From IMG/VR virus record IMGVR_UViG_3300044957_000763, positions 1 to 64,000 of that record: a stretch of 64,000 nt of DNA; one strand, given 5' to 3'. A model generated the notes under the pieces. It was not told where the DNA came from and searched no databases. It saw nothing but the letters and a program-made list of their open reading frames with translations. Below are positions 33,412 through 33,622 of this stretch, one piece after another. The first letter of the stretch is position 1, and each line of letters opens with the position of its first letter. The position numbers and the translations under genes are program-made.

Positions 33412-33448
33412 AAAAAAAGAAAGCCCGACTCGTAAGCCGGGCTTTCTT
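33412..33448 (-). terminator. Intrinsic terminator (attenuator) of the leader transcript
   Basis: AAGAAAGCCCG-GCT-TACG-AGT-CGGGCTTTCTT followed by a T run on the minus strand. Confidence 0.9.
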
Positions 33449-33469
33449 GGGGATTGGTCAATCTTACGA

Positions 33470-33583
33470 TTAAGCCTGGTACCCCCAGTTAGCCCGAACC
33501 ATATTGGGATAATTATGCACGGCGGTATTGACCTGATAGGTCAACCGTGCATTTCCATTATGGTTATTCAAGCTAAATCGCAT
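33470..33583 (-). CDS. 37-aa Asn/His/Tyr-rich leader peptide MRFSLNNHNGNARLTYQVNTAVHNYPNMVRANWGYQA (not in ORF track)
   Basis: SD AAGGA 6 nt before ATG 33583; 8 Asn, 2 His, 3 Tyr; its 3' end overlaps the antiterminator arm; lies between promoter and terminator. Confidence 0.85.
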   Translation of the reverse strand: MRFSLNNHNGNARLTYQVNTAVHNYPNMVRANWGYQA

Positions 33584-33622
33584 GTTCATTCCTTTCGCGA
33601 TGTTTTCATCGCCCACCTTCAT

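Follow-up and report, generated by a model that had tools for sequence, protein, structure and literature searches.

We identified, in a huge phage, a short reading frame rich in Asn, His and Tyr codons and a potentially switchable terminator, located between the strongest promoter of the region and the phage's own Asn, His and Tyr tRNA genes. This arrangement is most likely a leader-peptide transcription attenuator of phage tRNA genes (we estimate the probability of this reading at about 0.6), so that the phage probably makes these tRNAs only when ribosomes run short of them. To our knowledge, this classic bacterial control logic has not been described for tRNA genes. The analysis covered a window of 64 kb (positions 1 to 64,000 of IMG/VR record IMGVR_UViG_3300044957_000763), in which the unit and the tRNA array are organised as follows, all on the minus strand:

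33623..33651 (-), sigma-70 promoter, TTGACA, 17 bp, TATAAT (12 of 12 matches), with a transcription start inferred near 33616
33597..33612 (-), 5' stem-loop GCGAUG-AAAA-CAUCGC at the start of the transcript, likely a stabilising hairpin
33590..33595 (-), Shine-Dalgarno (SD) sequence AAAGGA, 6 nt before ATG 33583
33470..33583 (-), leader ORF of 37 codons plus TAA (33472-33470), with 8 Asn, 2 His and 3 Tyr codons
33555..33576 (-), segment 1 (codons 3-10, including N6 N7 H8 N9), predicted to pair with segment 2
33515..33552 (-), inner hairpin within the ORF (codons 11-23)
33489..33510 (-), segment 2 (codons 25-32), predicted to pair either with segment 1 or, through 33500-33491, with the terminator 5' arm (antiterminator helix A)
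33446..33488 (-), helix B hairpin (UGGGGGU...AUCCCCA), which encloses the stop codon and stacks under helix A in the antiterminator
33410..33448 (-), intrinsic terminator (the attenuator), with a stem of 13-14 bp, a 4-nt loop (UUAC or UACG, depending on the fold) and a U-run
33367..33390 (-), mini-ORF 1 (M E D N D N N stop) with its own SD, followed by a conserved hairpin (z = -3.2) and lying before Asn' and tRNA-Asn
33244..33320 (-), Asn', a tRNA-like cloverleaf with anticodon loop CUGUUAA and a CCA end
33167..33240 (-), tRNA-Asn (GTT)
33107..33142 (-), mini-ORF 2 (M D D H H H T Q L N N M...) with its own SD, reading into His'
33030..33106 (-), His', a non-canonical tRNA-His-like gene with a GUG anticodon, G-1:C73 and a CCA end
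32932..33007 (-), tRNA-His (GTG)
32859..32885 (-), mini-ORF 3 (M E S D Y N Y T T), codon 10 of which is the first base of tRNA-Tyr
32772..32858 (-), tRNA-Tyr (GTA)
32661..32745 (-), Tyr', a second class-II tRNA-Tyr-like gene with anticodon loop CUGUAGA

The first-pass annotation had proposed a classical attenuator in an Asn/His/Tyr leader, and every pairing that it listed was confirmed on the minus strand: TCGGGCT (33497-33491), TGGGGGT (33487-33481), ATCCCCA (33454-33448) and AGCCCGG (33437-33443). The ORF reads MRFSLNNHNGNARLTYQVNTAVHNYPNMVRANWGYQA, with NNHNGN at codons 6-11 and HNYPN at codons 23-27. The terminator was found at 33448-33417 with 14 pairs, 7 of them G-C, followed by a T-run, and both the inner hairpin ATGCACGG...CCGTGCAT and the 5' hairpin appeared in the minimum-free-energy fold. 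Two points had to be corrected. Only helix A (UCGGGCU:AGCCCGG) excludes the terminator, helix B (UGGGGGU:AUCCCCA) coexisting with it in the minimum-free-energy fold. The annotation had also missed the predicted 1:2 anti-antiterminator, 33576-33555 pairing with 33510-33489.

The promoter is the only one with 11 or more of 12 matches on either strand of the window, whereas about 0.02 such sites are expected by chance, and no sigma-70-like promoter lies on this strand between the terminator and the tRNA genes. tRNA-Asn, tRNA-His and tRNA-Tyr were identified both by ARAGORN and in the Rfam search (64.5 bits with the tRNA model for tRNA-Asn). Asn' folds as a cloverleaf at minimum free energy but was not called by ARAGORN or the Rfam tRNA model, although relatives carry an 87-nt tRNA-Asn(GTT) at this position. 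In a focused search His' scored 32.1 bits with the Rfam tRNA model against a gathering score of 29, its acceptor stem being read by eye, and Tyr' scored 37.9 bits with the Rfam tRNA-Sec model, below its gathering score, whereas ARAGORN called its counterpart tRNA-Tyr in the related sequences L096-L102.

The leader folds far better than expected by chance. The whole transcript (about 205 nt) folded at -84 kcal/mol (z = -7.25), and 0 of 200 shuffles folded as well. When folded in isolation, the antiterminator (-27.9 kcal/mol) was stronger than the terminator (-22.5 kcal/mol). To model the effect of a ribosome, we masked 28 nt around the A site. In the presence of the full terminator, equilibrium folding gave the terminator at every ribosome position, which says nothing about a kinetic switch; the decision must thus be kinetic, as in trp, and we folded nascent transcripts instead. 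On the nascent RNA, the antiterminator formed with P 0.71-0.93 for a ribosome A-site at codons 1-26 and dropped to about 0 for codons 27-36 and at the stop, with a transient 0.44 at codon 37; the second codon cluster (23-27) sits at the edge of the permissive zone. Sequestration of the terminator arm was -11.0 kcal/mol with a ribosome stalled at codon 8, matched by 4 of 250 dinucleotide shuffles, and the ribosome-dependent switch was -9.1 kcal/mol, reached by 0 of 250. By contrast, the antiterminator was also favoured on the ribosome-free nascent RNA (P 0.79), and the shuffle test without a ribosome was not significant (-6.5 kcal/mol, matched by 66 of 400). The estimated barrier from antiterminator to terminator was only 5.7 kcal/mol. 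The 1:2 pairing was predicted in the minimum-free-energy and RNAalifold consensus folds and would complete the trp/his-type scheme, but its pairs are nearly invariant and show no compensatory change, two being broken in L093 and one in L008, two of the variants from related uncultured phages described below.

The composition of the ORF also departs from chance. Thirteen of its 37 codons are Asn, His or Tyr (binomial P = 8e-5), a fraction of 0.35 that is higher than in all 341 small ATG-ORFs of the window (maximum 0.30). This enrichment was frame-specific, with 13, 1 and 2 such codons in the three frames (P = 1e-4 against dinucleotide shuffles), and the codon types match the three tRNA identities downstream. 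Noticeably, the enrichment is mainly Asn (P = 3.6e-4), His (0.13) and Tyr (0.21) not being significant alone. Longer versions of the ORF were rejected, since TTG 33631 and ATG 33621 lie at or before the inferred transcription start, ATG 33589 abuts the SD and is absent in the variants L007, L008 and L093, and the upstream frame is shifted in L008.

We recovered nine distinct variants of the unit from related uncultured phages. Both promoter hexamers are conserved in the nine while the spacer varies, and the ATG, frame and stop of the ORF are kept with no indel. The SD is invariant in 8 of 9 variants, being weakened to AAAAGA in L093, while the spacer between SD and ATG varies and carries an indel. 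Flanking genes are near saturation at synonymous sites (pS, the proportion of synonymous sites that differ, of 0.46-0.85), yet the unit is 87-96% identical. In the first six sequences, 28 of 114 sites varied in the 5' part and 0 of 65 in the 2-3 region (Fisher P = 1.7e-6). This high identity could partly reflect recent gene conversion, as HNH homing endonucleases sit inside the array in relatives. Moreover, single Asn/His/Tyr codons were not better conserved than other codons (5 of 13 changed against 11 of 23, P = 0.42), and pN/pS in the ORF was about 0.4-1; the conservation is therefore at nucleotide level and does not by itself prove translation.

Notably, the divergent lineage L093 carries 16 substitutions and a 2-nt deletion in the 2-3 region, yet it keeps the terminator (-19.1 kcal/mol) and the switch, whereas none of 300 random 16-substitution mutants kept all three measures. 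In this lineage, nucleotide 33446 changed together with both of its alternative partners, the terminator pair 33446/33419 going from G-C to A-U and the antiterminator pair 33488/33446 from C-G to U-A, although this three-way covariation comes from one lineage only. The antiterminator was also the RNAalifold consensus of truncated transcripts. Elsewhere, terminator pair 33437/33428 changes from G-U to A-U in L007 and L098, and pair 33609/33600 of the 5' stem-loop from A-U to G-C in L008 and L098. The inner hairpin shows compensatory pairs at 33541/33531 and 33546/33521 and a further one in L093 at alignment columns 79/85, but its outer 3 pairs are not kept in some variants.

INPHARED phages yielded only tRNA-Tyr-sized matches, and two relatives found through Ro60 (L003 and L004, 49% identity) were not syntenic for the leader. 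A search of IMG/VR with the spacer pattern recovered only the window's own contig and a chance hit in a high-GC phage (L005), and the invariant 18-mer was found nowhere else in IMG/VR and not at all in 185,579 species genomes. The junction of the related contig L010 to a tadA-like gene of freshwater Acidimicrobiia was treated as a probable assembly chimera and not as evidence for the host.

These data suggest the following mechanism, in which the dependence on translation and on tRNA supply is inferred from sequence and folding alone, for a phage whose host is unknown. If charged tRNA-Asn, tRNA-His and tRNA-Tyr are plentiful, the ribosome would run through codons 27-37 to the stop and sit there on segment 2 and helix B, the antiterminator could not form, and RNA polymerase would terminate at about 33412. 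If any of these tRNAs is scarce, the ribosome would stall at N6 N7 H8 N9 (N11), or further on up to about Y25, and mask segment 1; segment 2 would then pair with the terminator 5' arm as it emerges, and polymerase would read through into the array of GUN-anticodon tRNA genes (Asn', Asn, His', His, Tyr, Tyr'). The scarcity could be due to phage codon demand, to decay of the host tRNA pool, or to a host anticodon nuclease aimed at GUN or queuosine tRNAs. The new tRNAs would relieve the stall, giving negative feedback.

Other explanations are less likely but remain possible. The unit could be a stand-alone, highly expressed gene for a 37-residue peptide, a structured small RNA of about 205 nt, or both, with a constitutive terminator and an alternative pairing that is incidental or serves RNA stability, the tRNAs being made from basal readthrough or from phage-specific promoters that a sigma-70 scan cannot see. 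A perfect promoter followed by a strong terminator is typical of an independent gene, and the exceptionally stable fold, the nucleotide-level conservation with a pN/pS that is not protein-like, and the invariance of the C-terminal half of the peptide in 8 of 9 variants are in line with this view; attenuator-derived RNAs and leader peptides can also act in trans in other bacteria (PMC7968998, PMC7298713). However, the 21 nt between the stop and the terminator are as invariant as the ORF's 3' end, the middle of the peptide is free to change radically (for example Y to S, Q to L and N to A), and the shuffle-tested switch, the rebuilding of both alternative helices in L093, the match between codon types and tRNAs, and the absence of another visible promoter before the tRNAs all speak against it. 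We consider this alternative unlikely.

More doubtful still is a conditional terminator whose sensor is not the ribosome, a phage or host RNA-binding protein, a tRNA (T-box-like) or another RNA stabilising the antiterminator or the 1:2 helix while the ORF is incidental. Both alternative structures are supported, support for the role of individual codons is weak, L093 keeps the switch despite its weakened SD, and the neighbourhood is rich in RNA-handling genes (Ro60, a Y RNA and an RNA ligase). Nevertheless, the frame-specific codon enrichment and the pattern of conserved SD, variable spacer and conserved ATG have no explanation without translation. No T-box or other riboswitch or leader family reached its gathering score in Rfam: Thr_leader (RF00506) scored 24.4 and rnk_pseudo (RF01772) 32.0, each against a gathering score of 55, no other leader family matched at E of 1 or less, and no T-box hit was obtained at this threshold in 30000-36000. 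In addition, a T-box reads through when tRNA binds, which is the wrong sign for supplying a missing tRNA.

The least likely alternative is a constitutive leader that senses nothing and only tunes or processes the transcript, as a partial terminator setting a fixed ratio of leader RNA to tRNA precursor or as a 5' processing platform. A very strong promoter with a leaky strong terminator would give a fixed moderate tRNA output, and in T5 a strong promoter drives tRNA-Tyr expression without any reported attenuator (PMC11555353). But a fixed terminator needs no antiterminator, no ORF and no 1:2 helix, and the three are present, conserved and beyond chance, with the reservations given above for the 1:2 helix.

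A more speculative possibility, which we regard as unlikely but not excluded, is that the locus forms a two-tier translational sensor of the pool of GUN (queuosine-family) tRNAs. Besides the leader attenuator, the three SD-led mini-ORFs sit directly in front of Asn'/Asn, His'/His and Tyr, each with a run of NAY codons, and two of them read straight into the tRNA. Mini-ORF 1 is conserved in relatives and mini-ORF 2 is identical in them except for the SD-ATG spacer. Cognate-codon counts in the three mini-ORF spacers, taken one at a time, were weak (P = 0.21, 0.05 and 0.055), and only the NAY-codon runs were significant. Ribosomes that do not stall would invade and unfold the precursor, while those that stall would leave it free to be processed, the mini-ORFs thus tuning maturation of each tRNA pair. 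The whole locus would then serve as an inducible replacement kit, switched on when a host anticodon nuclease or tRNA decay depletes these tRNAs, beside RNA-repair genes (Ro60 with a Y RNA, and an RnlA-like ligase).

If confirmed, our main interpretation would mean that phages can meter their tRNA supply by direct feedback from the ribosome rather than expressing tRNAs constitutively, and the element would be a ready-made natural sensor of the availability of specific tRNAs, which bears on the question of why phages carry tRNAs (codon compensation, or escape from tRNA-cleaving defences). Phage tRNA genes are used against tRNA-targeting defences in the case of T5 tRNA-Tyr against retron-Eco7 PtuAB and of tRNA-Lys against PrrC (PMC11555353), and of tRNA against PARIS (PMC11464382), and evasion of anticodon nucleases has been hypothesised (PMC10264068). 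Here too a phage-encoded tRNA set lies behind a very strong promoter, Asn, His and Tyr are three of the four tRNAs cut by the colicin E5 type of anticodon nuclease (PMC1635277, PMC1669751), and a T4 RnlA-like RNA ligase and Ro60 with a Y RNA lie nearby. Those systems are described as constitutively or strongly expressed, no demand-sensing attenuator being reported in the papers we searched, and a defence link is here a hypothesis only.

T-box riboswitches likewise monitor a specific tRNA through a choice between terminator and antiterminator, but they bind uncharged tRNA directly, through a specifier codon and the T-box bulge, and control synthetase, biosynthesis and transporter genes, whereas the present leader has no Stem I or specifier architecture and a translated ORF is proposed instead. 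The closest systems are the leader-peptide attenuators of amino-acid operons (trpL, hisL, thrL, leuL, pheL, ilvL) and of aminoacyl-tRNA synthetase genes (pheST, and a His leader before hisS/hisZ in bacilli, PMC2965389), for which alone, as far as we know and in the literature we searched, this mechanism has been described. With these the phage unit shares a promoter-proximal short ORF with an SD, codons cognate to the regulated function, the predicted three-helix 1:2 / 2:3 / 3:4 logic, an intrinsic terminator before the regulated genes, and an antiterminator blocked in the folding model by a ribosome at the stop. It differs in being encoded by a phage, in a long ORF (37 codons) that runs through segment 2 and whose stop lies inside the antiterminator loop, in that three amino acids would be sensed by one leader, and in that the genes regulated would be tRNAs, that is, the sensed molecule itself, which would give direct feedback on tRNA supply rather than on amino-acid supply; control of biosynthesis enzymes or synthetases is not a structural requirement of the mechanism.

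The window is part of IMGVR_UViG_3300044957_000763, a 478,840-bp uncultured phage contig. Nearly all its proteins lack family matches, the exceptions being glycosyltransferases, a Ro60/TROVE protein and a T4 RnlA-like RNA ligase. The glycosyltransferase genes (families 2 and 4) form a cluster at 5195-14303 together with a polysaccharide pyruvyl transferase gene. The element studied here lies on the minus strand, and all coordinates are those of the window. The first-pass annotation had proposed an attenuator in which TCGGGCT (33497-33491) and TGGGGGT (33487-33481), within an unannotated leader ORF, pair with AGCCCGG (33443-33437) and ATCCCCA (33454-33448), with one hairpin inside the ORF and another at the 5' end. 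We found the four heptamers, the ORF and the two hairpins exactly at these places. The unit comprises the following features:

33651-33623, minus strand: promoter-like site, TTGACA, 17 bp, TATAAT
33583 (ATG) to 33472-33470 (TAA), minus strand: leader ORF of 37 codons, reading MRFSLNNHNGNARLTYQVNTAVHNYPNMVRANWGYQA
33576-33555, minus strand: segment 1, codons 3-10
33510-33489, minus strand: segment 2, codons 25-32
33448-33410, minus strand: terminator with a stem of 14 pairs and a U-run

The promoter-like site is the only one with 11 or more of 12 matches on either strand of the whole window, while about 0.02 such sites are expected by chance. The terminator is followed by tRNA-Asn(GTT), tRNA-His(GTG) and tRNA-Tyr(GTA), and our scan detected no sigma-70-like promoter on this strand between the terminator and the tRNAs.

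The transcript of about 206 nt folded at -84 kcal/mol (z = -7.25). The minimum-free-energy fold exhibited four parts: a 5' hairpin, a long helix between segments 1 and 2 that encloses the inner hairpin, helix B (UGGGGGU/AUCCCCA), and the terminator. The pairing of segments 1 and 2 had not been noticed in the first-pass annotation. Only helix A (UCGGGCU with AGCCCGG) competes with the terminator. With the complete terminator present, equilibrium folding gave the terminator wherever a ribosome was placed, so that any choice must be kinetic, as is the case for the trp attenuator. We thus folded the nascent RNA ending at 33436 or 33432. Helix A stacked on helix B formed with P 0.71-0.93 when a 28-nt ribosome mask had its A site at codons 1-26, whereas P was about 0 at codons 27-36 and at the stop. 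The isolated antiterminator was at -27.9 kcal/mol and the terminator at -22.5 kcal/mol, although the estimated refolding barrier from the former to the latter was modest (5.7 kcal/mol). With the ribosome at codon 8, sequestration of the terminator 5' arm was worth -11.0 kcal/mol, a value reached by 4 of 250 dinucleotide shuffles, against -1.9 kcal/mol at the stop. The difference of -9.1 kcal/mol was reached by 0 of 250 shuffles. In contrast, the value obtained without a ribosome (-6.5 kcal/mol) was unremarkable, since 66 of 400 shuffles matched it.

Thirteen of the 37 codons of the leader ORF are Asn (8), His (2) or Tyr (3). This fraction, 0.35, exceeds that of all 341 small ATG-ORFs of the window (maximum 0.30), with a binomial P of 8e-5 against the 11.2% found in the window's long ORFs. 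Notably, the enrichment belongs to the reading frame, with 13 such triplets in frame against 1 and 2 in the other frames (P = 1e-4 against dinucleotide shuffles). Taken singly, Asn was significant (P = 3.6e-4) but His (0.13) and Tyr (0.21) were not.

To identify relatives, we first searched with the peptide, which recovered two small ORF clusters, and then with an invariant 24-mer, which recovered three metagenome contigs. Homologues of the neighbouring 158-residue gene led to syntenic loci on contigs of up to 278 kb. Together, these searches gave nine distinct leader variants. The flanking protein genes differed from the window at 46-85% of synonymous sites, whereas the promoter-to-terminator unit was 87-96% identical. 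In all nine variants, both promoter hexamers, ATG 33583, the frame and the TAA were kept, and no indel fell in the ORF. The SD was kept in eight of nine, while the few bases between SD and ATG were the most variable spot and carried an indel, a pattern typical of a translation start. The longer ORFs called by gene finders start at or before the inferred transcription start, and the upstream frame is shifted in one of the variants (L008). In the first six sequences, 28 of 114 positions varied in the 5' part and none of 65 in 33502-33438, the region that must serve two structures (Fisher P = 1.7e-6). Compensatory changes supported both the 5' hairpin and the inner hairpin.

The L093/L094/L095 lineage of relatives is the informative exception, with 16 substitutions and a 2-nt deletion in the region that is otherwise invariant. 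It still folded into a terminator (-19.1 kcal/mol) and an antiterminator of the same topology, with sequestration of -9.35 kcal/mol when stalled and -2.96 kcal/mol at the stop. None of 300 random 16-substitution mutants of the consensus kept terminator, sequestration and switch at those levels. In RNAalifold consensus folds, the nucleotide homologous to 33446 changed from G to A, while its terminator partner 33419 and its antiterminator partner 33488 both changed from C to U. One base changing together with both alternative partners is what a switch predicts, although this is a single lineage and thus a single set of events. A fixed partial terminator appears very unlikely.

Other observations speak against the attenuator model. 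Individual Asn/His/Tyr codons were not better conserved than the others (5 of 13 changed against 11 of 23, P = 0.42), although each variant keeps 11-13 of them, and the SD is weakened in L093. A switch read by a protein or an RNA remains an improbable alternative; the existence of a conditional terminator of some kind is more secure than the identity of its sensor. The pN/pS ratio in the ORF was about 0.4-1, indicating that the constraint is on nucleotides. We also considered an independent small gene or small RNA with a constitutive terminator, which seems unlikely. Overall, the best explanation is a ribosome-mediated attenuator that releases transcription of the phage's GUN-anticodon tRNA array when Asn-, His- or Tyr-tRNA runs short, to which we assign a probability of about 0.6.

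It also speaks against the model that part of the high identity of the module may come from gene conversion, since HNH homing endonuclease genes sit inside the array in relatives and tRNA cassettes have been swapped. Comparison of the relatives L011, L012, L093 and L104 with window 33326-33167, and examination of L096-L103 5003-5575, showed that the array evolves by cassette exchange. Asn', a tRNA-like gene, is replaced by an 87-nt tRNA-Asn(GTT) with a long variable arm, the anticodon stem of tRNA-Asn is wholly rewritten by compensatory changes, tRNA-Tyr is duplicated, and a 350-nt insert carrying another tRNA-like end is present in relatives. In L096-L103, the canonical tRNA-Asn is replaced by an HNH endonuclease gene (phrog_2255, E = 9e-23). 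The host is unknown, and the one apparent junction to bacterial DNA was found in contig L010 (positions 1-260), which switches, inside the T-arm of the first tRNA-Asn, from phage sequence to a tadA-like gene 84-88% identical in protein to freshwater Acidimicrobiia/Ilumatobacteraceae genome bins. This is probably an assembly chimera through the shared GGTTCGAATCCCACC stretch, although an integration junction is not excluded.

The array and its surroundings contain additional features:

33390-33367, minus strand: mini-ORF before Asn'/Asn, reading MEDNDNN-stop
33320-33244, minus strand: Asn', tRNA-like gene
33142-33107, minus strand: mini-ORF before His'/His, reading MDDHHHTQLNNM...
33106-33030, minus strand: His', tRNA-like gene
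32885-32859, minus strand: mini-ORF before Tyr, reading MESDYNYTT...
32745-32661, minus strand: Tyr', tRNA-like gene
32394-32284, minus strand: YrlA-like Y RNA with a tRNA-like module
32194-30572, minus strand: Ro60 gene (TROVE plus vWA domains)
27709-26459, minus strand: T4 RnlA-family-like RNA ligase

Each mini-ORF is led by an SD in a repeated spacer (AGGAAAAGA(A)CAATGGA...) and contains a run of 4-5 NAY codons in which the cognate amino acid is prominent. The second and third read into the tRNA, and the spacers are identical in relatives except for the SD-ATG gap. These runs are unlikely by chance (P = 6.5e-4, 6.5e-3 and 1.8e-2, combined 1.1e-5), although the cognate match alone is weaker (combined P = 0.02). 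The three non-canonical paralogues have the same anticodons as their neighbours and encoded CCA ends but were not called by ARAGORN, so that the array holds a canonical and a deviant copy of each tRNA. Asn' has a cloverleaf minimum-free-energy fold but no covariance-model hit, His' scores 32.1 bits on the tRNA model and has G-1:C73, and Tyr' is of class-II type. These features suggest that there could be a second, translational layer of control. Further downstream, the YrlA-like Y RNA (40.4 bits, below the gathering score of 69) lies directly before the Ro60 gene. An extended -10 element, TGCTATAAT (about 32647-32639), just after Tyr', is conserved in the relatives L093 and L098 and may start this unit separately, with about 250 nt of conserved sequence of unknown function (32640-32400) in between. 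The RNA ligase (phrog_562, E = 2e-31; TIGR02308 at 39 bits, below its cut-off) lies downstream on the same strand as the tRNA/Ro60 block, from which it is separated by a 295-residue ORF with no family match and an NPCBM-domain protein. This may be an RNA-repair neighbourhood.

In the interpretation that we favour, the element works like the trp, his, thr, leu and pheA leaders and the synthetase leaders (pheST; a His leader before hisS, PMC2965389). It is not a sequence member of any Rfam leader family, and it is not a T-box. Our literature searches found no leader-peptide attenuator of tRNA genes. The departures from the known leaders are the regulated product (tRNAs, which gives direct feedback), three amino acids sensed at once, a long ORF whose stop lies inside the antiterminator loop, and a viral setting. 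Phage tRNAs as an answer to tRNA-cleaving defences are documented (PMC11555353, PMC10264068, PMC11464382), and Asn, His and Tyr are three of the four substrates of the colicin E5 type of anticodon nuclease (PMC1635277, PMC1669751). A demand-induced replacement set is therefore a plausible hypothesis.
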